Shown here piece by piece: positions 542 to 63,775 of a stretch of DNA of 64,000 nucleotides (within the stretch, counting starts at the first letter, position 1; every line of letters starts with the position of its first letter). Origin of the DNA: Euprymna scolopes (lineage: Eukaryota). The stretch lies in the NCBI GenBank assembly GCA_053919585.1, contig CM132785.1. The stretch is one strand, 5' to 3'. The position numbers and the translations under genes were made by a program. The notes under the pieces were generated by a model, which saw only the letters and a list, made by a program, of their open reading frames with translations, had not been told where the DNA came from and ran no database searches.

Positions 542-715
542 CTCCACGACCACACCCCATTTTTTCTAGGGTATCTCTAGCCTCGGAGAGATCCCGAGAA
601 AGTTCCGGATAACCGGCTTCCTCGCATTCAAGAATGATCTTTTCCAGTTGAGCCTGGTTTTTCTGTCTCACTGCAGCCCTGAGTCGATCCCGAAGATCTT
701 TCACAGGCTTAAGGC
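542..715 (-). CDS. Exon, helical domain class A ([12 protein letters not shown]...EEAGYPELS...GRG), 3' divergent block
   Basis: 174 nt, CAG acceptor, GTTAG donor, open frame. Confidence 0.88.
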
Positions 716-1604: not shown

Positions 1605-3610
1605 TACACATTTAAATACGCGGAAAGTTTACAGTAGAAAATCAGAGCTAACCTCCCACACCACCCTGGATCATGTGTAAGGTATTCCTGGCATGATAAA
1701 GATCAATGTCAAGTCCTGGAAGACCGGAAGCAACAGCCTGTTTGATAGATCGCTCAAGTTTTTTCTTATCTCTTGTATTGATTGCATGCTTCATAATATT
1801 TCGATAATATTCCGGCAATGTGGTACCTGAAGACAAAAAGCTAGTATTTTATAAATTATACATTTTTGAAAGGTTGCTAAAATGCATTAAATTCAAGAAA
1901 AATAAATAAAAAGCTATAAATATACAATGATTCAGTGTTTTTAAAAATTAACGAAATGTTTAAATAAACTTGGAGTACATAGTCGTTTTCAAGTCCAAAT
2001 GTTTTTCAAGCCGCCCTCTAAAATAATCAAGTTCTCCTTAGCTTCAACCACCGCCTGCAATTCTCTCGCTGTTGTCTCACCATTCACTCGATAAACTTAT
2101 TAGTTCTTATTCTCATTATGCCTCTGAGTCTTGATTATCTGTGACTCATTATATATATATAAATGCGTTTTCAAGAATAAATATAAATTGAATGTATTAC
2201 TATAAAAAATAAATGTCTAATGGCAATAAGACAATATATCACCTTCATAATAAAATAAATATACCGCTAAAGATAGTAAGATAATACTTGATCTTCATAA
2301 TAAAATAAATATATAATTAAAGTCATTAATCCAATATCTAACCTCCATAATAAAATGAATATATGATTAAAAGCAATAAGACAATGTATGACCTCCATAA
2401 TAAAATAAATATATGATCAAAGGTAATAAGACTATACTGACATCCATACTCTAATAAATATATGATTAAAGTCATTAAGACAATATATGACCCCCATAAT
2501 AAAATCAATATATGATCAAAGGCAATAAGATCTCCATAATAATATAAACATACGAGTAAAGGCAGAAAATATCTAATGAAATAAATATAAGATTAAAGCA
2601 ATAAGACAATATCTGACCTCCATAACCACCACCTAATCGTTTAAGGTGTAATCTGGCATCTTGGATATCAAAGCCGATCTCCGGATACTCGGTTCTTTCA
2701 CATTCTTGAATTAACTTTTCCAAAGTAGGGCGGTCTTCTCGTTTGATGGCAGATTTCAGATCATCGCGAAGCGTTTCAGCAGACCTCGGTCGCACCGATG
2801 TGTCTGCGCCTAACACCAATAAAAATGATTCTATTTAACAAAATCATGTTGAGTGAAGGATTTAAATAAATTCGCGAATTAAAAGATTTGCTCCATAAGC
2901 ATTAGGTACAACTTAGGCAAGAATTAAAGCTTTAGTCACAGATTTTACACTCGGATAAATTCTTTTACTTTTACGTTTTATAAAAATGAAAATTAATTTA
3001 GCATGATTACAATTATGTTTGTTATGGAAGAGTAAAGCCTATAATATGAAATAAATTACTATTCTAGAATCTGAATCCTATTCAATGTAAAACTTCTTTC
3101 TTTCAGACCGTATGCTATGGACTGAAACTTACAAAGTATGCATTCAATTGGTATCATTATTTAACAAAGCTAATGATGCCCTACATTTTTATATACAGAT
3201 GCCTTTAAAACCTGTGAATCCTAAATTATACGTAGTAGACATCAGTTAATAAACATTCCCCAAGTGTCCGTTTCTTTTGTTTATTTAAAATAGGGTTTTA
3301 GAGGACGTGATATTGAAACAAGGTTTCATTTATAAATTCAAATATTTCAGGTTAAGATTGAATTCGATTCATAGCTATTATACAGCAATTAAGCAAGAGT
3401 CCTGGAATTCACATTTCCCTTAAGAGTTTTTCTAGAATCAAAATTATTAAAGGAGTTTTATTAAAAATTGGAACTAATGTTATAAATTGTTTATTATATC
3501 AATGTTATAATAGGGGCATATTAAGGTTAGTATTTATCATTATGTTAATCGTTATAGTAATGCAAAAACTTCGGTTTGGGAATTTATTTTTACCCTTCTG
3601 AGAGTTTCCT

Positions 3611-4993: not shown

Positions 4994-6584
4994 TCGTAAA
5001 ACAAAGCTGATAATCATAATCTAAAAGCTGACTAAAATTGTGTTCATATTAACATAAAATACGATACCATAGAGAAAAGTCTGACCTCGTGATCCTTCGA
5101 TAGATGGTTGGATATTTTCTCGGGGACGGTACATAGTTGGGGGCATTAGGTTTGGTGATAAGGTATCAGTCGGAGTTTGTCCGACATTTGGCTTCACCTG
5201 CCGCCTTACTCCGACTCTTGGTGAGCGTGGTGGTTGCGGTGAACGTGCTTGCTGCTGAGAGCAGGGTTGCTGCGGTGAGCGTGGTTGTTGGGGCGATCTG
5301 GGTGGTTGTGGTGAGCGGGGTTGCTGTGTCGAACATGGTTGTTGTTGGGAGCGGACTGGCTGTGGGGAACGTGATGGCTGCGGGGACCTGGGTGGTTGTG
5401 GTGAATGAGGTTGTTGTGGGGAATGAGGTTGTTGCGGCGACCTAGGTGGTTGAGGCGAGCGTGGTTGCTGTGGCGACCTGATTGGTTGCGGCGACCTGGG
5501 CGGTTGTGGTGACCTCGGTGGCTGCGGTGAACGGGGTTGCTGCGACATACATGGTTGTTGTTGAGAGCGAGGTTGCTGCGGCGAACGGGGTGGCTGTGGC
5601 GAACGGGGAGATTGTGAAGAACGAGGGGAGTGAGGTGAACGCTGAGATTGAGCTGTATGGGGAGAGGGGTAAGGCAAACGCGCTGAATTTGGTGAACGTG
5701 GGGATCCGGGAGACAAGAGGCCAGCTAAACAACGCGAAAAAATAGAAACAGGTGATGAGGTTATATTTTGTAGAATAAAAATTAAAAATTGTACTGACAT
5801 ACAGAGCTAAATATAGCTCTGTATGTAAGTACAATTTAAAAAAAAATACTTTGACATAAATACACAAAAACATGCAAACATATAATAAATATAGTCGTAA
5901 TGATGAGAAAGTGCTCGATACTGATAATAGATCTCATGTGGGTCGAAGTTTTCAACTCCAATGTCAAAAAATTCCTGTTGAGCCATCCTCTTAATACTCA
6001 AATTCTATCACATCATTAAAGCTTTACCTAACATCACGGTGGTTGTCTCACCGTCTATTTGATATTAACCTTTATCCTCGAATAGCATTTGGGTCTTGAT
6101 GAATGGTTACTCTTTAGTAGAAAATCTATATGGTGACTGGCAGTTCCTTGCCAGTATATTTTTTATAGAGGAACTATCAGTTAACATAAATAAAAGTAAA
6201 AATAAAATCATCGTCTACGTTTATGTACGCTCAGTTCTTAAGTGTTAACAATAATAGAGCTTATGTCATTAAAATATTGGTGAATAATAAAATGAAAAAC
6301 GGAGTTGCATAAACATATATTTTTCACAAACGCACACATATATGGCATATAGTTAGTTCTTTCTACAAGTAAATCCTGACTAAATATTCAAAATAACAGT
6401 ATTCGAAACCCAAATAAGATCCCCTTGGTATGGTTACCACAACACTCGTTTATACGAGGAATTGTGTACCGTCTCCAAGTTATATTGCCTTAAATAACAG
6501 CACTAAGCTTGATATATCACCATACTAGATAGATTCGCGTCCTGGAATCCGGTAAGATCAAGATACACCAAAAAAGATATATTA

Positions 6585-10928: not shown

Positions 10929-11869
10929 CGTTTCGATAAACGTAGCGATATTACGTATTTAAAGGAAGAAACTCTCAAATGCTCAGTGAGCAAAAGTACC
11001 AGCAGCCGTAGCATAGTCTTTTATAAAATAAAATTACATTTCCGGTTTATTTTTAAAAGTTTAGGTTTGAACGCAAATTGCAAATCTATTGACAAAACAT
11101 AGATATTGAAAATATAATTATATAGGTAAATGAATATTTTTTTAGAAAACATGTATTCATTGAGAGACTGACCTCCGCGCATGCCTCCAATGTTTTCTAA
11201 CAGGTTTCGTGTCTGTTGGATATCAGGTTGAAGTTGCGGATGTCCTGAAGCAATGCACTCATCCATGGCCTTCTCCAATGCTTCTTTGTCTCTTCGTTTT
11301 CTGGCGGACTCTAGTTTTTCTCGAAGACTTTCAGGAGATTCTGTTCCTAATTATTAAAATCAATTATTATTCGACATAAACTATAACCGGAAGCATCCAA
11401 CCAAAAAAGGCAAAAATGCAGACTTTAATGTTTGCGGACAGAAACATTTTTAAAGCAGCAAGAATATATTAATATTTTCCAGATAAGCTGAACACATTTA
11501 GTGTCTAAAAATGTTATTAATTATAGAATAAATTATGGATATTTGATTACAGAAACTGAACAGAGTTTGGGTTCACTGTCTAGCTAGCTTCCTCTGAGGT
11601 CTCTTTTAAAGATTTTATAAATGCTAATTAAATAAATACTAATTAAATGAGATTATTCACCAAACAGAGTAATATATGTTCATTAATACTTATTATACGT
11701 AATACATCGTCATAAATATCATAAAATATATACATATATATTTTATATATCGGATATAACAATAAACTCATATAATTATGTATATGTATATTCAAATACA
11801 AGTATATATTTTTGGCACATATCTTATATGAGTATTTAATAATACTAAACACCAGTTAGTGAAATATGC

Positions 11870-11923: not shown

Positions 11924-13534
11924 GTATACTTATATATATGCATATATATATCTATATANNNNNNNNNNNNNNNNNNNNNNNNNNNNNNNNNNNNNNNNNN
12001 NNNNNNNNNNNNNNNNNNNNNNNNNNNNNNNNNNNNNNNNNNNNNNNNNNNNNNNNNNNNNNNNNNNNNNNNNNNNNNNNNNNNNNNNNNNNNNNNNNNN
12101 NNNNNNNNNNNNNNTATTGTCGTAGCTTTTAATCTCGCCATGGTTAAGTATTATTACTTTTTAACCGCAATTACAGTGAAATACCTGTCTGTGGTAATTA
12201 TATATTATAAATACATATAAATCTCCTATAATAAAAAGAGGGCGACATAATGCGAGAAAATACTCTCTCAGAAATATAAAATGTGCTTCTCCGGTAAAGC
12301 AGCCGATAATACAGCTGTCGTAATCGCACAAGAACATAACAAACATATGTTTAGATATATAGATAGATAGATGGATATTTATCCGTTTGTATATACTTTG
12401 TTATATCTTGTAATAAATAAGCCCCTGTTACATGAATTTATCAAATTTCAGTAATTATTAAATTATCGTTATAAAGCTTAAAACCAAACTGCAAAAGCGA
12501 TAGCAGTAAGTATGAATCCATGTTGCTAACCTCCTTTTCCGTCTTGCGTTTTATCCAGAGCTTCTCTGGCTTGCTGAATGTCATCGTCTAATTCTGGAAA
12601 TCCCATTGCGACACATTCTTTAATGATGTCACTTAGTATCTTCTTATCGTTGTAACGGACAGCCTCCCTCAGTTGATCGCGGAAGATTTCCGGAGAACGC
12701 GAGCCTGAGAATTGAGTAGTTAATTCATGTCAGCTAATCGATGTGTTCACAATAGATAAAAACTTATTTAGGAGATCATGAATAAATATTACTAACTATA
12801 AATGATCACTTAATGATTATAATATGCTTACTTACTATGAAGTTTTACTTAGTTCATGTAAAAAAAGAAGCTTAAAGAATTATTGTATTTCTATAGATAT
12901 AAAAATGTCTATAAAATCTTTTTCTGTTCTTTTTTATAATCATAAAGGCAATGTACGAATTACTCCATTTTCAGAGATGTAAACAGCACATCAACAAAAT
13001 TTCGTTTTGATGAGAACATTTGATAAAACCATTATATTTAATAATCATAAATATATCTTACAACATATCATTACTTTTAGGTTAGTTTATTGGTATTTAT
13101 TACGAAGCAATTAATAAGTATGAGCATATTTGAAAGTGGAGGGTTATCCCTTAAATAGTTCCTTGAAACATTGGATAAACTGAGAAATCAACATATTCAT
13201 AAGTTTTATTTATTACATCCTGGCACAAATGTTAATTGAAACAAGTATTAAAATTAAAATCCCCATAATAATTTATACGTAAGAGTATCAACAGACCTCC
13301 AACTCCACCTCCTAGCTCTTTCATAACATCCCTGGCTTGGCGTAACTCAGAAGCTAGTTCCGGATTTTGGTAATTTTCACACTCGCATATTAACGTGTCC
13401 AGTTTCTGTGGATCTCTCTCTTCTTTGGCCAATCTCAATTGCTCAAGAAGCATTTCTGGAGATTGGATTTCTTGCAAAGAATCTGGATAAAGATAACGGT
13501 CGTAAGATGACAGATTACGTGATTATTATAAGTT

Positions 13535-43614: not shown

Positions 43615-43660
<46 letters not shown>

Positions 43661-43702
43661 TGTATATATATATATGTATGCATTGATATGTAAGTCTACA
43701 TA

Positions 43703-43744
<42 letters not shown>

Positions 43745-43959: not shown

Positions 43960-44038
<79 letters not shown>

Positions 44039-44296: not shown

Positions 44297-44369
<73 letters not shown>

Positions 44370-51376: not shown

Positions 51377-54300
51377 TTGTGTGTGTTACAAATAAAATGA
51401 AATTATTCCATATCAATAAAAGAAAAGAAAAGACAGAAGATAAAAAAAGTATTTGCGAGAAAATAAAGAAGAGTAGTTTTAACTTTCAATTGTGTAGCGT
51501 TTGACAAGACATGGAAAAATATATTCTTATGGGTAAGTGTAGTACGATTTTCGGTAAGCTTGATTATGTTGTCGATTTCTGTTTCCTAGATTCTTTTCTA
51601 GAATCAAGTACTGACAGCAAGGACAACGTAAGCATTACCGACATTGGTAAAAGTGAAATTATTGCTATGTAAACGACTGCATTCGAACTTAACACAATCA
51701 AATCGCCAGTCTGTGTCGTTATCCGGTGCACCATCGTCGCCTCCCGTGCTCTAAATATTAAGCATTAATTCCAGCAATTAAAATTTATTATTTACTGTAA
51801 AGCATACCAATATTTTCATGCTGAAAGTGTTTACTTATTTAAGTATTTTAATGCTTTGTTAGTTACATGTCAATTGCAATAGAAAATTCCGAAACATATT
51901 CGAAAGAATCTTTGTATACTTCAAAAGCCTCTAAATATAGGGAATTATTGAGTATACAATATTTGCTCTGACCTACGGAAATATAGCATCCTTCAAATTT
52001 AGTTTGGAAATGTAAACAAATTGTAGTGAATCTAAATAAAGGCATAACTAGAGCAGATAATCTTTATGCAAGATTTTTAGAACCGTTTCACATCACTCTG
52101 CATTATAGTTTATAATATAGCGCATTAGTTTAAACAATGCGAATGTTTCATTTCAAGATGAAAGTGATTGTGTGAAAAGTCTACTGCAGTTAACTATAAC
52201 ATATATATATATTTTCAAAACGGCACCTTCCCTACGTGGATTGAACCGGCTTCCTCCAACGGAGGAAGTCTTAGATGTATTAAAATCACAAGCGATCACA
52301 ATCAGGGGAGATAACAACATTAGTTTTTGCAGGGAGGCGTTGAGGTAGTTTTACATGCACCGCTTACTATTCTCGAATAGTAATCCATCTGCTACTAACA
52401 AGAATTGGTGTGTCAACATGATTAGATTGATATAGTTATTAGAATGATAACATAACCAGTGCGAACTGAACGTATTGCAATCATTTTGATTAGACTAACG
52501 TTTGCAGCACTGATGTTTGCAAAGTTGGTTTTATTTGCTTATTATTTTTAATTGATTTCAATATGCTTATCCAATTCAATTTAAGATTAAACAAATCGAA
52601 TAATCATATGTTTAATGCACTTGTTATATGATGACGCTGATACAAAGAATATTGTGTTAACATAAAGTGTAGAAAAGTTCAGATTATCATGTCTATTTAA
52701 TTCCAAACTATTTGTTTCAGGTGTATTGTTATGTCATTTTTACAAAGGGAACAAGAAATTCAATACAACTGTGTAAAACAGTAATTATTCTTATTAAATA
52801 CGTTATATATTAGTGTCACAGATCTCAAACTTTTACTTAATTTAAAACGTGACAACTGTGTAAGCGCAAAGGCGAATGGGTGTATGTTCATGCCGAAGCG
52901 GAAATTGGAAAAAGAAAAAAAGAAAATGATTCAATAAGGTAATATCCTAGTGACTAACCTCCACGACCAAAGCCTAGTTTTTCCAGTGCGTCTCTGGCTA
53001 GATTAAGCTCGAGAGAAAGTTCCGGATAACCGGCTTCTTCGGACTCATCGATGGCTGTCTCCAATTCAAGTTTATTCTTGCTTTTGATCGCTGCGGTTAG
53101 TTGAGCTTGCAGTTCGTCTGGGGTTTTCAACGCTGATTAACGCAATTTGTAATTAAATGTAAGGGAGAAATAATTGTTTTTTTTTAATGAAAACTGCATT
53201 TATCGTTTATATTTAATGCGAATCTTGAGACACAAGTTTCCTTTATTTAAATATCCAGAAAATTCATTGCAAACAGTATTACGGCCATAATAAAATAAAT
53301 ATATAAACATATGAAATTAATTTTATAGGAAATTGTAAAAGGTTATTATGAATTAAAACAATGGCTTTCTTTGTGTGAAAACCACATTTATCGTGAAACG
53401 ATTTAGTTATACTTTAAATGAATCTTTAAACAAACATTGTCTTACTATTCAGACAATTTATTGCAAATAGATTTTATGACTATAATGAAATAGATGATAA
53501 ACATTTAGAATTAATGTTACTATAATTTGTAATAAAATCATTTTATAAATAAAAAAAATGAATGAAGAATATTTCGTTAATCAATTATGATGTAATCATG
53601 TATTGTCTGAGGTCATTTTGAATATTATTCATTATAAAAATAACTTGAAGCTTTGAATTTTGCGTAACCTTATGACATAAAACGTTGATGCGTATATAAA
53701 ACTTTCTTCTAACCTCCTTTGCCACCATTCAATTTATATAAGGTTTCTCTGGCTTCGTGAATGTCGGCATCAAGTCCAGGAAGGCCAGCTGATACGGCGT
53801 CTTTAATTGTTGACTCCAACACTTTCTTATCCTTTGATTTGATGGCTGTCTTCAACTGATGGCGCATGCTTTCGAGGGTTATAGACCCTGATAATTAAAT
53901 GTTAATTTTAATTGAACATTTCTATATAAAAAATACGGGACCAATAATAAAGATACTGATGTAGATAATTCTACATCAACAGGAATAATTTGATATTAAG
54001 GATTACATAGAAATTTGATTTAAAAAGAACATTCTTCTTACAATTTAAATTAGTCAAGAATTATTAAATAAAATGAATTTAATTGAAATATAAACACAAA
54101 CAATTTTAATGCAGATGATTTTTTTTGTGATTGGCTAACCTCCATATCCGCCTCCGAGTTTGTGAAGAGATTCACGAGCATCACGAAGATAGATCCCCAG
54201 TTCTGGTAATTGGATAGATTCAATATCCTGGATAAGCCTTTCCAGAACAGATCGATCTTTTTTCATTCCAGCTGAGCGCAGTTGATCACGCATATTTTTA

Positions 54301-55426
54301 GGAGAAGTTATATCAGCAGATACATCTATGTAAATAATAATTAGATATTTTATGAATAAATGAACGTATTATTTTATTCACATCCTATTTTTACACATAA
54401 AGTTACTAAAACATAAGCAAATTTGTATACAGTTTTGTATTAACTTTATTTATTACCACTAGAAATAAAATCTAGTTAATTAAGCAAGCAGTCATTCTTG
54501 ATAATCTATTTGGTAATATTAGATATAATAATAGAAAGAGAGGTGATAAATTATGATGTAATATCCCGGAAACTGACCTCCCGACTTAATTTTATACTTT
54601 CCAGCATGTCTCTGTATTACCCCAATATGAATAGCAGGCAATGTACTATTATAGCTGACAGCAGAAAATAATAAAACATGTACAACAAATAAATTATACC
54701 AAACGCAATAAAAATTAATTTTCTATCTACTTGCATAGCTTTTCAGTATCTCACTCTTTTTAAGTGTTTGCTTTTTTTTTAGGTTTTATATCGTAACATA
54801 AGAAGTTTCCAAAAATACGAATTTAAGATGGCGTCGTATTTTACGTGATGTGAAGAATTGCATGGTCCCATTATCTTGAATTTGTGGTTATAAGCTTTCT
54901 AGGAAACGATAGAAAATCTGAAAAAAAACGAACACTTACAAAAATATCAAAATGTAAAAGCTATTTAAATCGATCGAAAAGTAAATTTTCTATTGTTTAA
55001 TATATGTTATTTGTTGTAAATTTGTTTATTATTTATTTTCTGCTGTTAACTATAATGTGCCATTGCCGAACAACATTAGACGTAGACCTAAGTACTACTT
55101 TAGTTACATGGATTTTTCATAAGATTTTGACTGCGTTATTTTATTTTTTCTTTTATTTAATTTAATACCACGACAAATGCTATGTTAAAATAAATAGAAT
55201 ATTTTAAAATATTTCTACAAGTTAACAACAGAATTCGTACGAATTTATCTATCATTTGCCTTTATTAAAATTAAGTTTTACTGTTCATAAAGTATCAGAC
55301 AAATTATGCTTAGAAGCAAATCTGTTATATGTTTCAAATATGTGTATATATGTTTGTGTGTATATATAAATATATATATATATATACATTTATGCAAATA
55401 TTTATACATTTATACACTCATATATA

Positions 55427-55466: not shown

Positions 55467-58400
55467 TTGAAAAGTATAACAAGAGATTTCCTTCTATTTC
55501 TGCATTCACCATAATTTATGAATTAATGGATTATTACATCGAAGATCCATTACCTCTAAACAAACTTTATGTGTCACATAGACTAATATGAAACGTTTGA
55601 CTGATGAGTTGTATATTTAAATTATATACGGAAAAGCGATTATTGCACTTATTTAGACGATGATTATCAAATGAAAGATTCGAACCTCCAACGCCGGATT
55701 TTTTTCGGAACAATTGCATGCTAGGAAGTTTCACGTGCAGGCCGGGAGAAGATGTTGATCCTGATGTCCGAAATGAATAAAATTAATAGATATTTATTGT
55801 GATATTTTGAGCTGGAATGTCATTTACATAACTCCAATAAATTTGTCTTTTACAGCAATTAAACTTAGTCACAATTTTTATAAAACGTTTAGAAGTAAAT
55901 TATTTTTTTACAAATATTTAGTAAAATTAGATAAACCTCAAAATGTAATGAGATTTAAATAAACCAAATAGCATTATATTAGAAGGTTTATGTAAATTAT
56001 GAGAAAATAGGTTTACTTATAAGAAATATTTGATTTTTTTTATTTCTATTTTAAATAATATTTTATATTGTGCTTTAAATTCCATGTTTTGCATAAAAAA
56101 GTAAAATATTTTTTTAAATATTTATTTAATTCGAAAAGAAAAGCGCGTAAATACTTTATGAATCATAATTATATACAATCGGTGTTAGCGATAATTTTTA
56201 TAAAATATAAAATATTTTTTTAAATATTTATTTAATTCGAAAAGAAAAGCGCGTAAATACTTTAGGAATCATAATTATATACAATCGGTGTTAGCGATAA
56301 TTTTTATAAAGCTCTGTAAGCAATAAAAACCATAGAAACAAACCTTCACCACTTTTTTCCAGAGATTCCAGACGAATCCTGGCATCCTGGATTTCTGGCA
56401 TAAGCTCTGAATACCCAGAACTGACACATTCAGTTATGACATTCTCTAGAACTTCAGGGTCGTTTTTCTTCATAGCATTCTCTAGTTTCACGCGTAGTTT
56501 CTCTGCACTCAATTTTCCTGACAAACAAAAGTACTAATGACTAAACATAGCAACTTTATTCCCACCTCAAGACAACTAGTAAGATAGTGAAAATGACGAG
56601 TATATAAAAAGATGAAACTGGAAGTTCTCTTTTTATTACTCGTCTTGAAAGATTTAAATGAATGACATGAGAAATTCATTGAAATATGAAAGAAAGAATT
56701 GATGGAAATAAGAAAGAAAGAAAAGAAGTAAATTTTGATGAAAAAATATTCCAAGGAAAGACTTTTCTTCTATGGTAAAACATATATATATTTACAATTA
56801 TTAACCCGATGAAAAAAGGAAACGTATGATAATAATTTTGAAGAATTCTGAGCTTAATAGTGAACACATATCACTTAATAGAAATAGAAAATACTTTTCT
56901 TTGTGCCCTGAAGTAAAACACCGTAGCTCCGTATATTCATGTTTACTTTTCAGTCGCAAATATACTTATTAATTCAGAAAATAAATTGATACAAATTTGA
57001 TAGAAATTGATAGAAATGTTTGAAGAAATTTATCTCGATAGCATTTAGCGTTATTTTTTACAGACTCGATTGATCATAAAATCTAACAGATCATCAAATG
57101 TTTACTTTTTTTTTTACAGTTTTCATCAAGAAGATTAAAAGTGTTAGTTGTTTAAATATGATTACTAGAGTATTTGAAAATATAGAGAGGGTATTTGCTC
57201 GAAAAATAAACTTTAATACGATGTAGTGGAGTAAATAAAATTGTATATTGAAATATATATATTTTAACATGAATTGTATAAAAACAATGGACAACCTGTG
57301 TCGGTAAAGCGTTTTGATCAATACTCATTAATCATTAGGGTGATGAATGCAGTTTGTTAAAGCATGTATGTTATTTATTGCTCTTAGCAGGTTTTATATG
57401 ATTATGAAAATTTGCTAACTTCATAAGAACGAAAAGAGTTGTCCATTATTTTTATAGTAATTATTTATAATAATCGAAATGGTTACAGAAAAGCCGTAGA
57501 AATGTTAAATGTGGCGTTACTCGCCGAAAATAAGAAAGCAGATTATAAAGGAATTAATAATGAATGACCCATTAACTAACCTCCGCGCCCAAAGCCCATT
57601 CTCTCCAGAGTGTCTCTGGCGTGACGCAGATCGAGAGAAAGTTCCGGATAACAAGCTTGCTCACATTCCATGATGGCTTTCTCCAAATGAGATCGACTCT
57701 TTACCTCGAGTGCTGACCTCAAATGACCACGAATTGCATCCGGCGATGGGAGTCCTGATTAACGTAATTAGGAGTTTGTATTTTACACGTAAAAGTAAAC
57801 CGGCAACGTTAGCTCTTTATAAGTTTCAATTTCATAGAATAAAGAATAGTAATTTCTTAAAGTATCAGATTTATGAATTCGTGAACGATTACAATTAATA
57901 CATAATAACGAATTATATTCAAGGTGAAAATATTTTTATGTAACTCTATTTTTTAACTAAATATGATATAATATTTTTATTTAATCTATGAAAAATATTT
58001 CAGTAGTTTAATTATTTAAATATTTTTGGAATTATTTTCAATTTAAATTAGTTTTATTTCCTCTGTAAAATATAGATTTTAATCGAACCTAACCTCCTTT
58101 ACCAGACTTCAATTTATGCAAGGTTTCCCTTGCTTCTTGTATTTCTGAATGCAGACCAGGCAGGCCACTCGAGGTACTTTCTTTGATGGCTGCATCCAAG
58201 AGTTTCTTGTTCTTCGATTTTATAGCGTATTTCAATCGCTGACGTGTGTCTTCAGGGGACAATAATCCTGACAATTGAGATTCGAATTAATGTAACAGTT
58301 TCAATAAAATAAAGCGTAAATCAAATCAATAAAACGTATATTTCCAAGTGAATATCAAATGAATTTATCGTTATTTGGAAGTTTTATAAGTAAAACAATT

Positions 58401-61400
58401 TATTTCAGAGTACACATATGTTTCAATTATTTTAACAGAATTGTATATTATGATGTTTTGCTGCATCTAAAAACAGCGAAAAATGATTGATAACTGTATA
58501 TTTCGAAATATGATTTATACTATCAATACTTCACTGTATAGTTTGAAACGTAACATTATGCACCTAAATTTAAATATAATTTAACTTTTGAATTACATCA
58601 TTTAACCATATATAAGATTTTATTTAAAAAGCTGCCTGTGAATTATTAACATTAAAATATAAAGATCATTTGTAATTATCTGTAATTTTCTAACCTCCAA
58701 ATCCGCCTCCTAATTTGTGAAGAGCTTCCCGTGCCTCACGAAGGTCCAAGCCAAGTTCTGGAAATCGGGCATTTTCGGCCACCTGGATAAGTCGTTCTAA
58801 AGCCAATCGGTCGTGATGCTTTACAGCTGAACGTAACTGGTCACTCAGAGTGCTTGGTGACACAGACACGTCTGCAGAGACATCTATATGGAATAATTTA
58901 CGACAATTCGCTCAGAATCAATAATAAGTATATCTTTCAAACTGGCAATATTTGTTTGATTGAAATGTTTAAATATAGGTTTTTAGTTGGTTTACTAATT
59001 CTTAATTTTTTTCATGTAATTGTGATTCATTTAAATAGAAAAATGTAACTTATTACACAAATAGATGAAAAATCTCAAGCATTTTTTGTCAATTCGTACG
59101 AATTTTTAATAATTCAAAATGTGTTTTATTTAGCTAATTACTTCCGAGATAAATCACCTAAACGATTAATGTATCTCGATTAATGTATCTCGAAAATTAC
59201 AGAGTCCTTACACTTAAGTTAAAAAAGATATAAAATACCCTTCCATTGTTGAGGGTGATTGAAGTACGAATGGTTGATCAAGGAATATAATAGTGTAGTT
59301 AAAGAGATATATTAAACTAAGAATGCTCCTAAGAGCTTGGAACAAAGTACCAGGAATTGATCTTATAGGATTTACAAGCTGATACCAAGAATTCTGAAAT
59401 CGAGAGGGTCTCAACAATATAGTAAGGATTTGAATATTGCATGAGGCCTCAATAGCGGAATCGCCTTGCAATCAGGTATCAGAATTGCCCCCTTTCAGAA
59501 TTTCCCCGAAGAATTTCGTAACAGTGTACTTGAATCTCTAGAGACTACCCCGGAAATTCTGCACTGCTCGGAATCACAGAAAGTAGAACTGTCAATATTT
59601 ATTTAACATATATCGTTTCAGCTGGCATCGTCAAAGCATAAATCAAAAAATTCATTCACCATGATTCCCGTATTAAGACATTATCAAAATTCATTTTTAA
59701 CATGCTTTATAATAAATACATTTGACGACATTTGTTTAAATACTTAAATGCTTTATAATAAATAAAGTTATAGTTCTATTTTTTAAATAAAATTATAAAG
59801 AGTTAAGAAAAATAATCGAAAGCGGGGTAAATGTTTCGAACCTTCTTCTCCTGGTTTCTCCTGGTATATTCGTAGGCTAGGAAGTTTCACATGGTAGCCA
59901 GGAATTGTCAGAGATCCTGATGACCAAAAATGTTTAAGAAAAAGAGTTTAAAAATACTCTGATATTAGACATTAAATCATGTTTATTTTTATTTCGTAAT
60001 GTGATGATTTGGAAGCAATTTATTCAGCAGAGATGAATCGTTTTTCAGTTACTTTAAAGGAATACTCCATTAAGAAATAATATATAAATAAGTAAGGAAA
60101 TTTGTTACAGTAGAACCCCGGGATACGGCACTAAAATTAGTAACAAAGTATAGCATATATTAGACATGTATATAATCAAATCCGTAACCAGGGGCCGGAA
60201 AAAAAAACATCGTATTCCACATGGTAACCTGAAAAAATTGTATCCTAGGGCCACCGTATCCTAGGGTTCTACTGTATATGATTTTTTGTGAAGCTTTCTG
60301 TTTATATAATAATATCTATCGCTGCAATATATGAATAATATATCAAGTATTAAAATAGCCTAACGATGAATAAACTATAAAGCATTTTTATATTTTACAA
60401 CGATAGAATCTCAGTTGTAATGAAGAAATGCGTTTTAATAGATTCTCTATCTATCTTCTAAATATTTAATAAAACTATAAATTTATTATCTTTAAAACAG
60501 AAATGTGCTTCTTAAGCAGGATAAATTATTACAGATAAAAATGATACAATTCAGATGATGTTAATTCAGTGAATCGTTTAAAATCTTAAATTCGATATAA
60601 GAGATGGAAACAAACCTCGATCACTTTCTTCCAAGGATTCCAGATGGAGTCTGGCGTCCTCGATATCGGGTAAAAGTTCCGTGTGTCCGGAACAGATACA
60701 TTCAGTTATCACTTTCTCTAAAACTTCTGGATCATTTTTCTTCATAGCATCTTCTAGTTTCTGACGGAGTTTATCTACACTCAATTTTCCTGACAAGCAA
60801 AAACGTTCCAATAAAAACATTAACTCCATCCCCATGTACAACATAAGTAGCAGTAAAGAAAAAGAAGAGAAGACTGCGTGACTAAAGTGAGTTGTGCAGT
60901 TTAGATACTACAGCATATGTGCAACCAGAAATGAAAGAATTCGTGATAGAATGAGCCAAGAAGTTATTGACCTCTGATAAAGCAAATATTTAAAATGTAC
61001 GATAGTTATTTCCCAGGTTATCGATGCAATAGAAGTGTACGTACGTGTGTCCAGCCTGCTTCAATAATCACATTTGCAAATATATTTTATGAGCAAGGAA
61101 GGAAAGGCTTAATATTAAACATTATAAATTTTAATAAGTGATAATAATCCAAGAAAGGAAAAGTTAATAACGTATGAAAATTTCATTTTATGGGCTAAAG
61201 AATGAAAGTTTAACTTTGAGAACTAATAATAAAAAATAAAGGAAATAATTTATTTGACTTTTTGGTTACCAAAATAGTATTTGTTTATAGGAAAAGAGGT
61301 GTTTTATTTACATTTTCTGTAGAGATAGACAGTTTATTTGTTTAATGTATAATTTCACCCGCGTATTTATTGTTTCCGTAAAAGTTAACTCGTATATATA

Positions 61401-63289
61401 TTTTTTAGTTGTAAGTTTCACTTCGATTAGTTGTTTCGTTATTTTACAGTAAAATGTACATCGAACGTGATAAGAGTAATGTTCATGTTCTTTTATAACA
61501 TGTGTTACACGATCATTTTTGTTTCGTAGTTTTATAAAGATGATAAATAAACTCCATTATAGAAAGAAAAGCATATAACTAATGATCATATTCATGATGT
61601 ATTGGTTCGTATGAATGTATATTATAAATAAGAAGGGGAAAGATATTGATGCTGTATACCTTGAATCAACAGAAGAAATGCTAGAACACTAGATTCGATA
61701 CGACCAGAAAATAATAGAAAATAAAAAGAAAGTTAAAATGCATTGTTACAACCCACTCCAGTGATAATAAAGAAAAAGGTAGAGTAAAAAAGTGAATGTC
61801 GATATGTGTTGATAAATAAAGTCTATAAAAATTATATATAAATTATAAAAAATTGTCATTTTATTGCTAAAATAAGAATAGGTCGACGTCATGAATAAAA
61901 TAGTATTTGTATTGCTGTAAATCATTTATATTAAATGTTTTAATCGGAAATAAATGTCATAGATATATATACTCAAATTGACATGTCTTTACAATCCGTT
62001 CGACAAAGATGGCGACCACTGGATATTCGTTTATACAATAAATACAAATATATATATATCAACACATTAACAACTGAAGTGCATTAGTAGTCTTTAGAGG
62101 TGGTGCAAAAGCCGATTAAAGTGAGAAACACTACGGAAAGAGTTAACAAATTAATACCCCATACACTGACCTCCACGTCCAAATCCCATACTCTCCAGAG
62201 TGTCTCTGGCCAAACAAAGATCATGAGAAAGTTCCGGATAACCGGCTTCCTCGCCTTCAATGATGGCATTCTCCAATTCAACTTTATTTCTAGTTTTGAT
62301 TGCGGCCACCAGTCGGCCACGGAGAACATCCGGGTATTTCAGATCTGATTAACGTAATTGGTAAGTAAATACCATGTTATATTAAATCATAAAGACATAA
62401 TTGCCTCATTACTGCATTAAAAGTATATGAAAATATTTCGCTGAATTCATTTTATTTAATAAAACATTGTAATGTAATTCTCAAGAAAGTTTGATAACAA
62501 TTTAACAAATGAAAGTGGACGAAATATAGAGCTTACTTTGAATTTAACAGAAAAAAAATTAATGGAGTTTAATTCAAGGGGTTTAAATGTTATAATTTTG
62601 TAGGCAATGTTGCTTTACAAACATGTTTTAGTAAGTAAACATATTTGATAAAGGTCGATATAAATCTGTTTACTCTAACCTCCTTTGCCGCTGTCCAATT
62701 TGTGAAGGGTTTTCCTGGCTTTATGGATGTCATCATCTAAATCAGTAAAGCCGGCTGTCACACAATCTTTAATGGCTTCATCCAACTTCTTCATGTCATT
62801 TGATTCGAAGGCCGCATTCAGTCTTTCATGTAGATTTTCCAGGGAGAGACTTCCTGATAATCGAAAATCAATTTTACTCATATTTTTTCTTAATAAACAA
62901 TAACAGACATAGGTTTTTTTGTTTTGTAAATCAAATGGAATAATTCCTTTATACAATGACTCTACATGCATGGCTTTCATGTTGCCATATTAACTGTATG
63001 AAATGAAACCAATTCTTTTGAATTGTTATGCGTATCATGGTGTGTTATTATTAATATTGGGACTATTAATCAGAATCGAAATCGAAAAAAATCGGAACTC
63101 TCTGAGATATCGGAATCAGAAAAATAATAGATTAATTTCCGATCCAAATGCGATTTTTACTTACTTATTTGTTATTTTGTTCAAATTAAAACGTAATTTT
63201 ATATTTCTCGCACAAATGAATAATATTCATAAATATTTTACAATGAGTTGTAATCTTGGATACGATACATAAAAGGAAAACATTAAGAA

Positions 63290-63356
<67 letters not shown>

Positions 63357-63775
63357 CTAAGATTTTAATGTAAATGAAGACTCTCTGCAAAATTACACAA
63401 TCAGAAAAAAACAATGGAAACCATACTTTTAAGTTGATTTTAAAATGTAGATCGGTAATTGGATCGGAATAAGTAAACATATTGGAATCGTCCCATCACT
63501 AGTTATTATATATAAACATTTTGGTTATAATGGATACCCATTTTATAAGATTAAAATAGATATAAATTATTATGTCGAATATTTCTAACCTCCGAATCCG
63601 CCTCCCATTTTCTTCAGTGCGTCCCGTGCACTACGAAGATCAAACGAAATTTCTGGGTACTTGGCTTCTTCAGCAATGTGGATCAGTTTCTCCAATCTTG
63701 CTCGGTCTTTGTGTTTCACAGCTGACTGCAACTGAGCTCGCAGTCTCGCTGGTGGCAGGTCTTCCAGAGAGATAT
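542..63775 (-). CDS. Partial giant multi-exon gene: tandem array of 39 ~60-aa helical domains plus 10 Pro/Ser linkers in a C-B-A-E-D five-exon super-repeat; both ends outside the window or not visible
   Basis: 49 exons with AG acceptors and GT donors, all phase 1-1, lengths 75-639 nt, all multiples of 3. Shared motif: (S/T)P(E/D)xLRxxLxxAxxxxDxxxLExxIxECxxxG(Y/F/H)PELxxD(I/L)xxARxxLxxxGxGxG. Joining into one transcript is inferred, not observed. Confidence 0.85.
1653..1826 (-). CDS. Exon, class B ([13 protein letters not shown]...SGLPGLD...GGVG), 3' divergent block
   Basis: 174 nt, CAG acceptor, GTTAG donor. Confidence 0.87.
2200..2626. repeat. Imperfect ~50-bp minisatellite, about 7-8 copies, overlapping an exon donor
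   Basis: Unit like acctccataataaaataaatatatgattaaaggcaataagacaatatatg at about 2241, 2291, 2341, 2391, 2440, 2490 and 2616. Confidence 0.85.
2618..2809 (-). CDS. Exon, class C ([18 protein letters not shown]...EYPEIG...GGYG), 3' divergent block
   Basis: 192 nt, TAG acceptor (an in-frame CAG 6 nt downstream would give 186 nt), GTCAG donor. Confidence 0.85.
5086..5724 (-). CDS. Exon, expanded class D linker: 213 aa Ser/Pro/Gln/Arg-rich with RSPQ[P/Q]P hexapeptide repeats
   Basis: 639 nt, pyrimidine tract plus TAG acceptor, GTCAG donor, GC-rich island; begins [11 protein letters not shown] like other D exons ([10 protein letters not shown]). Confidence 0.85.
6817..7254 (-). mobile_element. Non-autonomous Helitron-like element with internal (CA)n
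   Basis: Minus strand starts TCTATATATCTATAAAAG and ends with hairpin CCCGGGCAACGCCGGG followed by CTAG; inserted between A and T with no TSD. Confidence 0.75.
7641..9551. mobile_element. Composite foldback/MITE-like element
   Basis: 7641-7695 is inverted relative to ~9495-9551; ~230-bp direct repeat at ~7720-7953 and ~9108-9343; long imperfect palindrome ~9118-9487 with AATTCAAGATGGCG in both arms. Confidence 0.65.
10795..10963. repeat. ~37-bp unit, two direct copies and one inverted copy, interleaved with (TA)n
   Basis: tttaaatacg(c/t)aatatcgctacgtttttasaaacgca and its reverse complement. Confidence 0.7.
11173..11346 (-). CDS. Exon, divergent class E ([17 protein letters not shown]...[11 protein letters not shown]...GGMRG)
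   Basis: 174 nt, TAG acceptor, GTCAG donor. Confidence 0.86.
11580..11623 (-). pseudogene. Truncated class A pseudo-exon (acceptor plus [14 protein letters not shown] then stop)
   Basis: About 43 nt align without gaps to the acceptor and 5' end of class A exons; sits where A is expected between B and E; in-frame TAG, remainder absent. Confidence 0.65.
12531..12704 (-). CDS. Exon, class B (central expansion)
   Basis: 174 nt, CAG/GTTAG; [12 protein letters not shown]...[18 protein letters not shown]; not in the ORF track. Confidence 0.88.
13297..13482 (-). CDS. Exon, class C
   Basis: 186 nt, CAG/GTCTG; [22 protein letters not shown]... Confidence 0.87.
14032..14187 (-). CDS. Exon, class D linker
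   Basis: 156 nt, TAG/GTTCG; [22 protein letters not shown]...SSDPNER. Confidence 0.82.
14510..14686 (-). CDS. Exon, class E
   Basis: 177 nt, CAG/GTTAG; [12 protein letters not shown]...SSGHSEL. Confidence 0.88.
15585..15761 (-). CDS. Exon, class A (AAG acceptor)
   Basis: 177 nt, AAG/GTCAG; [44 protein letters not shown]. Confidence 0.83.
17521..17694 (-). CDS. Exon, class B
   Basis: 174 nt, CAG/GTTAG. Confidence 0.88.
18813..18998 (-). CDS. Exon, class C
   Basis: 186 nt, CAG/GTTTG. Confidence 0.87.
19652..19798 (-). CDS. Exon, class D linker (9 nt shorter)
   Basis: 147 nt, TAG/GTTAG, open; [18 protein letters not shown]...SSESKQT. Confidence 0.8.
20132..20308 (-). CDS. Exon, class E
   Basis: 177 nt, CAG/GTTAG. 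Confidence 0.88.
20594..20755 (-). pseudogene. Decayed extra class E exon copy
   Basis: Gap-free alignment to the adjacent E exon; acceptor region deleted; terminal GGA codon changed to TAA; GTTAG donor retained. Confidence 0.8.
21211..21282. repeat. 36-bp tandem duplication
   Basis: tttgctcatgttggtcatatttcccccg(a/g)gaactga x2. Confidence 0.8.
22011..22187 (-). CDS. Exon, class A
   Basis: 177 nt, TAG/GTCAG. Confidence 0.88.
22412..22585 (-). CDS. Exon, class B
   Basis: 174 nt, CAG/GTTAG. Confidence 0.88.
23728..23913 (-). CDS. Exon, class C
   Basis: 186 nt, TAG/GTTTG. Confidence 0.87.
24770..24901 (-). CDS. Exon, class D linker (24 nt shorter)
   Basis: 132 nt, TAG/GTTAG, open; [15 protein letters not shown]...SSEPNQR. 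Confidence 0.8.
25225..25401 (-). CDS. Exon, class E
   Basis: 177 nt, CAG/GTTAG. Confidence 0.88.
26835..27011 (-). CDS. Exon, class A
   Basis: 177 nt, TAG/GTTAG. Confidence 0.87.
27491..27664 (-). CDS. Exon, class B
   Basis: 174 nt, TAG/GTTAG. Confidence 0.88.
28662..28847 (-). CDS. Exon, class C
   Basis: 186 nt, CAG/GTCTG. Confidence 0.87.
30199..30354 (-). CDS. Exon, class D linker
   Basis: 156 nt, TAG/GTTAG. Confidence 0.82.
30589..30765 (-). CDS. Exon, class E
   Basis: 177 nt, CAG/GTTAG. Confidence 0.88.
32001..32177 (-). CDS. Exon, class A
   Basis: 177 nt, TAG/GTTAG; not in the ORF track. Confidence 0.87.
32634..32807 (-). CDS. Exon, class B
   Basis: 174 nt, CAG/GTTAG; not in the ORF track. 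Confidence 0.87.
33891..34076 (-). CDS. Exon, class C
   Basis: 186 nt, CAG/GTGTG. Confidence 0.86.
34561..34716 (-). CDS. Exon, class D linker
   Basis: 156 nt, TAG/GTTTG. Confidence 0.82.
35022..35198 (-). CDS. Exon, class E
   Basis: 177 nt, CAG/GTTTG. Confidence 0.86.
36545..36721 (-). CDS. Exon, class A
   Basis: 177 nt, TAG/GTCAG. Confidence 0.87.
38044..38217 (-). CDS. Exon, class B
   Basis: 174 nt, CAG/GTTAG. Confidence 0.88.
39756..39821. repeat. 22-bp tandem repeat x3
   Basis: ttaag(g/a)attcagaa(g/a)tacttcc. Confidence 0.85.
40338..40523 (-). CDS. Exon, class C
   Basis: 186 nt, CAG/GTTTG. Confidence 0.87.
41538..41693 (-). CDS. Exon, class D linker
   Basis: 156 nt, TAG/GTTAG. Confidence 0.82.
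42614..42790 (-). CDS. Exon, class E (somewhat degenerate core, ECISSG to EFLSPG)
   Basis: 177 nt, CAG/GTTAG. Confidence 0.82.
44507..44662 (-). CDS. Exon, class D linker
   Basis: 156 nt, TAG/GTTAG. Confidence 0.82.
44902..45008. mobile_element. ~107-bp near-perfect hairpin, probable MITE, at the edge of a (TA)n tract
   Basis: ~46-50 bp arms (ggcaattaagctacaca...ctag) with 2-3 mismatches, short loop, TA flanks. Confidence 0.65.
45659..45879. repeat. 38-bp minisatellite, ~5.8 copies
   Basis: gt(a/g)tatgtatgggtctacagatatgt(t/a)tgcgtgtaaaa. Confidence 0.92.
47570..47746 (-). CDS. Exon, class E (first exon of the central expansion)
   Basis: 177 nt, CAG/GTTAG. Confidence 0.87.
50921..51000 (-). 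CDS. Candidate terminal exon: short-D-like peptide [26 protein letters not shown] then stop
   Basis: TTTTGATTATCAG acceptor resembling other D acceptors; phase-1 frame similar to the 75-nt D exons; ends in TAA; AATAAA on the minus strand about 165 nt downstream (weak evidence in AT-rich DNA). Confidence 0.6.
51675..51744 (-). mobile_element. Possible decayed tRNA-derived SINE head
   Basis: Minus strand GGAGGCG...TGGTGCACCGG (A-box-like)...GTTCGAATGC (B-box-like); no cloverleaf. Confidence 0.3.
52959..53132 (-). CDS. Exon, class A (5' divergent block)
   Basis: 174 nt, CAG/GTTAG; [43 protein letters not shown]. Confidence 0.87.
53714..53887 (-). CDS. Exon, class B (5' block)
   Basis: 174 nt, CAG/GTTAG; [22 protein letters not shown]...[14 protein letters not shown]. 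Confidence 0.87.
54140..54325 (-). CDS. Exon, class C (5' block)
   Basis: 186 nt, TAG/GTTAG; [20 protein letters not shown]...[12 protein letters not shown]. Confidence 0.86.
54578..54615 (-). pseudogene. Short remnant of a domain exon 3' end (RDMLES... plus GTCAG donor) next to a foldback element
   Basis: ctgacctcc...atactttccagcatgtctctg resembles the class A 3' end ctgacctcc...atactctccagagtgtctctg, with a 1-nt deletion. Confidence 0.4.
54637..55067. mobile_element. Degenerate foldback/MITE with long imperfect terminal inverted repeats
   Basis: ggcaatgtactattatagctgacagcagaaaata matches the reverse complement of tattttctgctgttaactataatgtgccattgcc; internal aatttaagatggcg / ccattatcttgaattt pair. 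Confidence 0.6.
55686..55760 (-). CDS. Exon, short class D linker ([25 protein letters not shown])
   Basis: 75 nt, CAG/GTTCG; paralogous to 59,842-59,916. Confidence 0.78.
56103..56310. repeat. ~105-bp tandem duplication just downstream of an E-exon donor
   Basis: aaaatattttttttaaatatttatttaattcgaaaagaaaagcgcg...gttagcgataatttttataaa x2. Confidence 0.85.
56344..56517 (-). CDS. Exon, class E (5' block)
   Basis: 174 nt, CAG/GTTTG. Confidence 0.86.
57581..57754 (-). CDS. Exon, class A (5' block)
   Basis: 174 nt, CAG/GTTAG; [16 protein letters not shown]...[10 protein letters not shown]. Confidence 0.87.
58094..58267 (-). CDS. Exon, class B (5' block)
   Basis: 174 nt, CAG/GTTAG. Confidence 0.87.
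58695..58883 (-). CDS. Exon, class C (5' block)
   Basis: 189 nt, TAG/GTTAG; [26 protein letters not shown]...RFPELGLDL. Confidence 0.86.
59842..59916 (-). CDS. Exon, short class D linker ([25 protein letters not shown])
   Basis: 75 nt, CAG/GTTCG. Confidence 0.78.
60108..60274. mobile_element. Tc1/mariner (pogo-like) MITE, 167 bp
   Basis: 21-bp TIRs CAGTAGAACCC(CG/TA)GGATACGG with TA target-site duplication. Confidence 0.8.
60616..60789 (-). CDS. Exon, class E (5' block)
   Basis: 174 nt, CAG/GTTTG. Confidence 0.86.
62171..62344 (-). CDS. Exon, class A (5' block)
   Basis: 174 nt, CAG/GTCAG. Confidence 0.87.
62680..62853 (-). CDS. Exon, class B (5' block)
   Basis: 174 nt, CAG/GTTAG. Confidence 0.87.
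63590..63775 (-). CDS. Exon, class C (5'-most exon visible)
   Basis: 186 nt, TAG/GTTAG; [25 protein letters not shown]...KYPEISFDL. Confidence 0.86.

Follow-up and report, generated by a model that had tools for sequence, protein, structure and literature searches.

Repeat exons of the window

A domain of ~59 amino acids, encoded one copy to an exon, recurs throughout the window (i.e. the whole 64,000-nucleotide stretch of Euprymna scolopes DNA that was analysed). A profile search with the window's own copies yielded 40 domain matches, all on the minus strand. Thirty-nine copies were intact, with exons of 174, 177 or 186 nt that each followed an AG acceptor in phase and ended at the conserved donor GAG|GT(T/C)(A/T)G; the remaining copy (20595-20774) contained four stops and lacked a donor. 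Ten linker exons of 75 to 639 nt were present in the same phase as the domain exons, and all 49 exons were phase 1-1 with lengths divisible by 3. In silico splicing of the 49 exons in order generated 8,781 nt encoding 2,926 amino acids, with no stops and no Ns; the outer limits of the exon set (542 and 63775) were adopted from an initial sequence-only reading. That reading had proposed 39 one-domain exons and ten linker exons, which profile search and splice-site inspection matched exactly, and a beads-on-a-string protein of >2,900 amino acids, a layout and size borne out by one-domain exons in the single open frame of the window alone. The features are listed in gene direction.

63590..63775 (-): domain exon 1, L, alternative acceptor 63760; profile and splice sites
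62680..62853 (-): domain exon 2, K; profile and splice sites
62171..62344 (-): domain exon 3, R; profile and splice sites
60616..60789 (-): domain exon 4, T; profile and splice sites
59842..59916 (-): short linker exon, 25 aa; same phase
58695..58871 (-): domain exon 5, L; profile and splice sites
58094..58267 (-): domain exon 6, K; splice sites, donor used in RNA contig L001
57581..57754 (-): domain exon 7, R; splice sites, acceptor used in RNA contig L001
56344..56517 (-): domain exon 8, T; profile and splice sites
55686..55760 (-): short linker exon, 25 aa; same phase
54140..54325 (-): domain exon 9, L; profile and splice sites
53714..53887 (-): domain exon 10, K; profile and splice sites
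52959..53132 (-): domain exon 11, R; profile and splice sites
50921..51003 (-): short-linker paralogue with stop; left out of spliced frame
47570..47746 (-): domain exon 12, T; profile and splice sites
44507..44662 (-): long linker exon, 52 aa; same phase
42614..42790 (-): domain exon 13, T (block without L, K, R); profile and splice sites
41538..41693 (-): long linker exon; same phase
40338..40523 (-): domain exon 14, L; profile and splice sites
38044..38217 (-): domain exon 15, K; profile and splice sites
36545..36721 (-): domain exon 16, R; profile and splice sites
35022..35198 (-): domain exon 17, T; profile and splice sites
34561..34716 (-): long linker exon; same phase
33891..34076 (-): domain exon 18, L; profile and splice sites
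32634..32807 (-): domain exon 19, K; profile and splice sites
32001..32177 (-): domain exon 20, R; profile and splice sites
30589..30765 (-): domain exon 21, T; profile and splice sites
30199..30354 (-): long linker exon; same phase
28662..28847 (-): domain exon 22, L; profile and splice sites
27491..27664 (-): domain exon 23, K; profile and splice sites
26835..27011 (-): domain exon 24, R; profile and splice sites
25225..25401 (-): domain exon 25, T; profile and splice sites
24770..24901 (-): long linker exon, 44 aa; same phase
23728..23913 (-): domain exon 26, L; profile and splice sites
22412..22585 (-): domain exon 27, K; profile and splice sites
22011..22187 (-): domain exon 28, R; profile and splice sites, one RNA read
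20595..20774 (-): decayed T-type pseudo-exon; 4 stops, no donor, 0 reads
20132..20308 (-): domain exon 29, T; splice sites, RNA reads
19652..19798 (-): long linker exon, 49 aa; same phase, RNA reads
18813..18998 (-): domain exon 30, L; splice sites
17521..17694 (-): domain exon 31, K; splice sites
15585..15761 (-): domain exon 32, R; splice sites
14510..14686 (-): domain exon 33, T; splice sites
14032..14187 (-): long linker exon; same phase
13297..13482 (-): domain exon 34, L; splice sites
12531..12704 (-): domain exon 35, K; splice sites
11173..11346 (-): domain exon 36, R-like; splice sites
5086..5724 (-): giant linker exon, 213 aa; linker ends and internal RSPQ(P/Q)P array
2618..2803 (-): domain exon 37, L; profile and splice sites
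1653..1826 (-): domain exon 38, K; profile and splice sites
542..715 (-): domain exon 39, R; profile and splice sites

The domain subtypes (i.e. L, K, R and T) were arranged as LKRT-LKRT-LKR(no T)-T-T-LKRT-LKRT-LKRT-LKRT-LKRT-LKR-(giant linker)-LKR. A fixed order of four subtypes plus a linker, as first perceived in the sequence-only reading, was confirmed as L-K-R-T plus linker and recurred across the window and the inspected 200 kb. Linker motifs were either short (GSWSFPxFHxKxPKFSLFRKKHG) or long (52 aa), and one was expanded into an RSPQPP array, the giant linker retaining the usual linker start and end around its internal repeats. The short-linker paralogue ends in a stop and is either a pseudo-exon or an alternative last exon; some transcripts could end early at this position.

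Older and younger blocks, as had been suggested previously, were apparent from nucleotide identities between same-subtype exons of 62-78% and 82-92%, respectively. In a comparison of the young blocks of the window, exons were 83-92% identical and their flanking introns 54-69%, so that conservation was far higher in exons. The copies were under purifying selection, with pN/pS of 0.11 to 0.23 despite divergence of 25-35% or more in silent sites and introns; Ka/Ks within subtypes was ~0.2. Thirteen blocks located just upstream exhibited pN/pS of 0.11-0.15 and pS of 0.26-0.35, with whole units being 74-88% identical, and there were also upstream zones of near-identical units (about 31 of 1.29 kb and 7 of 3.08 kb).

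The 59-residue domain and its relatives

An S/T-P motif opens each repeat unit, and a Gly-rich hinge closes it (GGGxGG, GFGRGG or GGKGG). The single domain was predicted to fold into three helices (pLDDT 82), and modelling of two domains (pTM 0.44) suggests that neighbours have no fixed packing against each other. No match to the domain was obtained in a Pfam search and no sequence match was found among solved structures. Fold searches with the domain model produced generic helical matches only. The structural neighbours included MIT domains (i.e. Vta1, Vps4, ULK3 and calpain-7) with Z scores of 6.9-7.3, a range that is common among helical bundles and within noise; the MIT domain is, like the repeat, a small three-helix module but gave no sequence match in Pfam or among solved structures. 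The spectrin repeat (PF00435, ~106 aa) resembles this domain in forming chains of three-helix bundles. It was rejected as there was no Pfam match, the module here is 59 aa and neighbours are separated by Gly-rich hinges, whereas in spectrin continuous helices join repeats about twice as long.

Profile matches identify the domain as the helical repeat found at the C-terminus of molluscan proteins of the KY-like (KY, kyphoscoliosis peptidase), hillarin-like and ltd-1-like types. The window profile detected 16-17 copies in Octopus KY-like proteins and 2-6 in hillarin-like and ltd-1-like proteins of Haliotis, confirming the loose likeness to hillarin/KY C-terminal repeats that the sequence-only reading had suggested. 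One such protein, O. vulgaris CAI9725887 (2,069 aa), combines a Transglut_core domain and three Ig-like_KY domains with 16-17 tandem copies of the 59-aa domain. Vertebrate KY, at about 600 aa, is not known to contain such a repeat array, and no KY/hillarin/LTD-1 family member of comparable size is known to have been described. The KY/hillarin family is linked to Z-disc maintenance and cytokinesis. Members of the KY/hillarin/LTD-1 family act together with filamin C at the Z-disc (PMC6078408), and others act at actin-like structures or the cleavage furrow (PMC3718969).

Extent of the locus and comparison with Octopus

Both flanks were examined for N-terminal domains and a gene end, as the sequence-only reading had advised; KY exons were found upstream and a conserved C-terminal tail downstream, 40 to 44 kb from the window. 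The KY N-terminal exons share the strand of the window exons at a distance of 470 to 530 kb upstream and include three Ig-like_KY (PF23265) matches above the curated cut-off (79.6, 73.2 and 48.1 bits; C3:154976177-154977244, minus strand, 5' of the array). Transglut_core (PF01841) gave no match at the Euprymna locus in an exon-wise Pfam search. Exons at C3:154979295-154991745 were nevertheless 77-85% identical to octopus residues 79-292, themselves a weak Transglut_core match (25.8 bits), and the region is divided between two exons. KY/hillarin/LTD-1 proteins, transglutaminase-like adaptors of the cytoskeleton, carry N-terminal Ig-like_KY domains and a transglutaminase-like region; the Euprymna locus contains the former and, as a candidate for the latter, the exons resembling octopus residues 79-292. 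A coiled-coil stretch is encoded after the KY module and before the repeat array.

At least 407 domain exons were located over about 567 kb between the KY N-terminal exons and the C-terminal tail. This count comprises 169 domain matches in the 200 kb inspected, where every match was on the minus strand and the plus strand yielded none, and at least 238 further distinct upstream exon matches counted from match coordinates. Nine N stretches were all intronic and touched no exon; they are masks rather than gaps of uncertain length, as a genome copy with identical coordinates lacks the Ns, and the 169 matches were recovered with or without masking of these positions. The N-terminus of O. vulgaris CAI9725887 (56-85% identity) maps around the array together with its coiled coil, its first repeat and its C-terminal tail, with order and strand kept. 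From this order and strand and the octopus gene model, we infer a single gene of the KY/hillarin family, ~637 kb in length on the minus strand (roughly C3:154,398,000 to 155,035,300), of which the window is an internal slice of about one tenth.

The octopus KY-like giant proteins, for which a literature search found no published description, have an N-terminus orthologous to that of the Euprymna gene (56-85% identity over residues 1-743; ~84% in the largest exon) and have in common with it the 59-aa repeat, one-domain exons, C-terminal tail and L-K-R-T order. The O. sinensis orthologue has one domain per exon, an annotated product of 6,596 aa with Ig-like_KY and, within the stretch inspected, one cassette (classed L-K-R-T-T). 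The octopus entries are automatic annotations that divide the locus among several gene models. Repeat exons number at least 407 in Euprymna as compared to 16-17 in the O. vulgaris model and ~90 in O. sinensis (an estimate from the 6,596 aa), and the L-K-R-T cassette, single in the inspected O. sinensis stretch, is present in dozens of copies in Euprymna. The single Octopus cassette is likely to be the progenitor of the super-repeat, and the array probably grew as a cassette of five exons (L, K, R, T and linker) was duplicated in tandem.

Transcripts, alternative readings and the proposed product

The predicted joining of consecutive exons was observed in RNA for one exon pair. Logan contig L001 contained the exact predicted junction 58094|57754 (exon 6 to exon 7) with the GT..AG intron removed, and kept both flanking introns unspliced. 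Only four polyA reads mapped to the window in about 4.7 Gb sampled; their orientation was consistent with minus-strand RNA and their coverage was almost entirely of linker, T and R exons, with ~30 intronic bases at 20900-20985. Neither these reads nor the Logan contig linked window exons to the KY N-terminus or the tail. Overall, we consider it likely that one giant KY/hillarin/LTD-1 gene, with an array grown by cassettes, encodes a bead-chain product.

It is possible, though less likely, that the array acts mainly as an alternative-splicing reservoir from which each transcript takes a subset of exons, with cassettes or whole blocks being skipped in the manner of the titin I-band, usual products falling far below the exon sum and exon choice setting length or binding specificity. 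The phase 1-1 symmetry of all exons and the very low coverage in polyA libraries are in keeping with such a role, as is the stop-bearing linker paralogue, which could yield a short isoform. The O. vulgaris model also skips the L-K-R-T-T cassette that is annotated separately in O. sinensis, but the octopus models may simply be incomplete. Moreover, the sole junction seen connects neighbouring exons, and purifying selection on each individual copy indicates that each is translated with a frequency that is of consequence.

Division of the array into several separate genes, or inflation of a shorter repeat during assembly, is improbable. The near-identical upstream units are of a type that assemblers can inflate, and the octopus annotations do split the locus into multiple models; however, the blocks in the window and inspected 200 kb differ from one another (units 74-88% identical) and so do not repeat a single unit. 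In addition, none of the repeat exons shows a start-codon context, every one is phase 1-1, and orthologous N- and C-termini bracket the entire array. The least probable reading, in which a tandem duplication in decay has left the window with mostly unused pseudo-exons beside a much smaller functional KY-like gene, could draw on the one clear pseudo-exon, the stop-bearing linker copy and low expression in the sampled runs, but is at odds with the retention of an open reading frame and of acceptor and donor sites in 39 of 40 domain copies, the low pN/pS between such diverged copies and the exact spliced junction in RNA.

As the product of a single giant gene, the protein would be a chain anchored to the cytoskeleton, its helical beads folding independently and connected by flexible hinges, in which periodic linker motifs may act as evenly spaced binding or regulatory sites. 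The four domains of a cassette might, as the sequence-only reading proposed, form one functional unit. Its role could be that of a long spacer, spring or scaffold, like titin, nebulin or spectrin. Given the symmetry of all exons, different subsets can be used with the frame kept intact, and product size may be tuned by splicing in this manner. More tentatively, most of the 400-plus exons might be joined in one mRNA encoding >25,000 aa (about 3 MDa), such that an undescribed three-helix domain on a KY/hillarin anchor forms a giant elastic or ruler filament of the cephalopod lineage with a length set by exon amplification and splicing.

Proteins of megadalton size are very few, and those known (titin, nebulin, obscurin and dumpy) have been instructive on molecular rulers and springs. 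If most of the exons are used, the Euprymna protein would belong to the titin size class and be among the largest in any animal. The 59-aa repeat merits definition as a family, being absent from Pfam, and automatic annotation breaks such loci into uncharacterised fragments. With old and young blocks adjoining and a single-copy cassette in a related genome, the growth of a giant gene may be traced stepwise. Titin and nebulin likewise have single modules on symmetric exons, a super-repeat and duplication blocks of differing age, and the product here may, like them, be in the megadalton range. The likeness is architectural only, as the modules of titin and nebulin are Ig, Fn3 and nebulin repeats in contrast to the 59-aa three-helix bundle; kinship by module was rejected on the lack of any sequence or Pfam relation and on the predicted fold. 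A different anchor family with a different, undescribed module has here reached a titin-like design of one-domain symmetric exons and a super-repeat independently.

Exon anatomy of the window and selection on the copies

The window is AT-rich (G+C of ~29%) and eukaryotic in layout, with kilobases of TA and CA microsatellites between short open frames. A 60-column domain profile, seeded on a few obvious copies and iterated over the six-frame translation, matched 40 times, always on the minus strand, and 39 of these copies are intact. All 39 have an acceptor AG, with the exon opening at the second position of a codon, and a conserved donor, GAG/GT(T/C)(A/T)G, that splits a Gly codon behind its first base. 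Domain exons are 174, 177 or 186 nt in size, and ten linker exons in the same phase comprise two short copies of 75 nt, seven long copies of 132-156 nt and a giant one of 639 nt. Lengths are divisible by three in 49/49 exons. Splicing in genomic order, with outer boundaries (i.e. 542 and 63775) taken from the sequence-only reading, gave 8,781 nt that read as a single frame of 2,926 aa with neither stops nor N, bearing out the claims of 39 one-domain exons, ten linkers and a product of >2,900 aa. All nine N stretches lie between exons and no reported frame crosses one; they are masks and not gaps of unknown length, as the genome copy has identical coordinates and no N. These stretches were overwritten with N for the analyses, and the count of 169 domains in the 200 kb read (see below) is the same with or without masking. 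No Pfam match was obtained for single domains or linkers, including the giant linker.

Identity between the four domain subtypes (i.e. L, K, R and T) is 30-40%. Along the gene they are arranged as L, K, R and T, with a linker after the T, and this order recurs through the window as previously described, with the three exceptions that head the following list.

Exceptions to the super-repeat and atypical exons of the window
42614-44662, minus strand: block of only T and linker
Before the stop-bearing linker copy near 50921-51003, minus strand: T absent
Before the giant linker, minus strand: T absent
20595-20774, minus strand: decayed T-type extra exon within an intron flanked by R and T exons, the sole copy not intact; four stops, no donor, no reads on it
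50921-51003, minus strand: paralogue of the short linkers (26 protein letters) with a stop where other linkers have G/gt
5086-5724, minus strand: giant linker exon with the usual start (10 protein letters), ~30 internal RSPQ(P/Q)P copies and the usual end EGSRG/gt

The stop-bearing linker is located at the switch from old blocks with short linkers to young blocks with long linkers, and could be dead or serve as an alternative last exon. The proposed distinction between old and young blocks was upheld, with same-subtype exons exhibiting 62-78% nucleotide identity among the three 5' blocks as compared to 82-92% among the six or seven younger ones.

Within subtypes, Ka/Ks was ~0.2. Thirteen blocks just upstream of the window, whose whole units are 74-88% identical, exhibited silent-site differences of 0.26-0.35 and replacement differences of 0.03-0.05 (pN/pS of 0.11-0.15). 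In the young blocks of the window, exons were 83-92% identical as compared to 54-69% for 200 nt of flanking intron. The low ratios and the greater conservation of exons than introns therefore show that each copy is kept by protein-level selection, indicating that the repeats are real coding exons. Decay of the array is disfavoured, as these selection tests argue against it.

Transcription of the array

Spliced RNA joining consecutive exons was looked for and one exact junction was found. A 119-aa protein in a public collection (P0002) corresponds to K exon 58094-58267 spliced to R exon 57581-57754. Its source is a Logan contig from SRR24189495 that carries the exact predicted 60-nt junction, a 339-nt GT..AG intron having been spliced out; this contig is a partly processed transcript, as its sequence continues into introns on both sides. 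Four reads from three polyA libraries were placed at 19610-22188, too few for a table of splice joints. Their coverage falls almost wholly on linker, T and R exons; ~30 read bases (20900-20985) lie in the intron between the pseudo-exon 20595-20774, itself without coverage, and the R exon. First mates map to the plus strand, which fits minus-strand RNA given the usual stranded libraries. Expression of the array is low in the three polyA libraries sampled, and RNA support is thin though real. Separately, five runs labelled as RNA (i.e. X1-X4 and X6) contained 62-83% of the words from a 6-kb stretch in which introns make up three quarters of the length, which points to abundant unspliced transcript or DNA in these libraries.

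Family identity, extent and origin of the gene

A profile search of 1.8 billion representatives produced 219 matches, most being single-exon fragments. Named matches were Octopus 'kyphoscoliosis peptidase-like' and 'transglutaminase-like domain-containing' proteins and Haliotis 'hillarin-like' and 'ltd-1-like' proteins. The loose resemblance to hillarin/KY-like proteins noted in the sequence-only reading was hence correct, as the Octopus KY-like and both kinds of Haliotis protein share the domain. The abalone proteins have 2-6 copies. In the 2,069-aa O. vulgaris protein CAI9725887, a Transglut_core and three Ig-like_KY domains are accompanied by a charged coiled-coil stretch, and the 59-aa domain is repeated 16-17 times in tandem. 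A homologue search with the spliced two-domain product found no protein but the query, and the ESM Atlas nothing but unnamed protist clusters. A protist myosin and a Rhodelphis protein matched the repeat weakly, which may reflect shared helical periodicity, not homology.

The window corresponds to C3:154,442,001-154,506,000 in the 5.9-Gb genome, C3 being the sequence that holds the whole array. Examination of the flanks for N-terminal domains and the end of the gene placed exons matching the octopus N-terminus and three Ig-like_KY matches 5' of the array and the tail match 3' of it.

Matches of CAI9725887 on C3
155,035,338 to 154,975,883, minus strand: residues 1-743 (four exon matches), 56-85% identity
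154,974,698-154,975,060, minus strand: coiled coil, 60% identity
154,968,382, minus strand: first repeat, 73% identity
154,401,344-154,401,643, minus strand: C-terminal tail, part 1, 46% identity
154,398,026-154,398,220, minus strand: C-terminal tail, part 2, 66% identity

The three Pfam Ig-like_KY matches, all above cut-off, span C3 154,976,177-154,977,244; no Transglut_core match was obtained in the exon-wise Pfam search near these exons. Repeat matches between the N- and C-terminal exons are on the minus strand throughout. In the 200 kb read as sequence, 169 domain matches were found, 164 being intact at a score of >=40, and the L-K-R-T order was unchanged. The 200 kb contain 32 near-invariant copies of the short linker GSWSFPxFHxKxPKFSLFRKKHG (L013-L021, i.e. 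handles of the stretch C3:154497761-154593778), a candidate periodic binding motif.

Upstream of the 200 kb there are at least 238 further distinct exon positions among the matches listed, with 150 candidates scored per search, for a total of at least 407 domain exons over ~567 kb, a lower bound that combines the sequence read with matches elsewhere known by coordinates only. Use of all these exons would give a protein of >25,000 aa. The choice of exons may outweigh total length: all exons are symmetric, octopus models differ in the exons included and a stop terminates one linker copy. The alternative of several genes or an assembly artefact is disfavoured for the part read. For the window, an artefact was rejected because the blocks differ from one another. 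Two zones outside the window, known by coordinates only and counted among the upstream positions, hold near-identical units, namely ~31 units of 1,283-1,290 bp (~1.29 kb) with three domain exons each (C3:154817250-154858580) and seven 3,084-bp units of five exons (C3 154868843-154889927). Such units were either amplified very recently or stem from the assembly.

The Octopus sinensis orthologue has one domain per exon in a 27.7-kb stretch, as in the window, and this stretch falls within a called gene whose 6,596-aa product has Ig-like_KY. Two 'core' repeats that adjoin each other in the O. vulgaris model are separated in this stretch by five exons, which were classed with the window subtype profiles as L, K, R, T and T by margins of 1, 11, 20, 12 and 15 bits, respectively. 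The same scoring found no T-type repeat in the O. vulgaris model. The last ~6 repeats before the tail in Euprymna resemble the last octopus core repeats. The sequence data fit a single ancestral L-K-R-T cassette that was tandemly amplified in the Euprymna lineage. At least eight further loci of the Euprymna genome have Ig-like_KY, some with stops (C21:47.96-49.26 Mb, C27:96.02-96.13 Mb, C2:24.9 and 37.6 Mb, C17:2.4 Mb and C75); all 59-aa repeat matches among the candidates scored were on C3, and the amplified array appears confined to this paralogue.

Domain structure and proposed action

AlphaFold2 modelling of 79 aligned copies predicted a three-helix bundle (helices 6-19, 22-35 and 38-54; pLDDT of 82), in which the near-invariant residues L13, A16, L25, I29, A47, R48 and L51 fit a hydrophobic core. 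A two-domain model gave two such bundles with no confident mutual orientation (pTM of 0.44), consistent with a Gly-rich hinge at each exon junction, where 31 of 48 junction codons encode Gly. Foldseek found no significant match for the two-domain model. For the single domain, VIA-align and AFDB clusters returned generic helical neighbours and uncharacterised proteins at 53% and 32% identity, which look like homologues. No sequence relatives were found among solved structures, only designed helical proteins at E >0.001. MIT domains were recurrent structural neighbours at Z ~7, within noise.

Candidate phosphorylation sites are the S/T-P with which almost all domains begin and the RSPQPP array of the giant linker, and the RGG-like hinges are candidate methylation sites. 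The K-x-P-K-F pattern of the short linker is reminiscent of AHNAK repeats. The product would be a chain of flexible helical beads anchored to the cytoskeleton, with linker motifs spaced regularly along it, and may act as a spacer, spring or scaffold. This role is inferred from the known biology of the family: KY acts together with filamin C at the Z-disc (PMC6078408), whereas hillarin localises to the cleavage furrow and LTD-1 shows an actin-like distribution (PMC3718969). No paper on the gene, its repeat and super-repeat, or a giant KY-like protein turned up in literature searches. The KY-like family itself is already known, and its 6,596-aa octopus member is already present in automatic annotation; the scale of the Euprymna array is several times larger.
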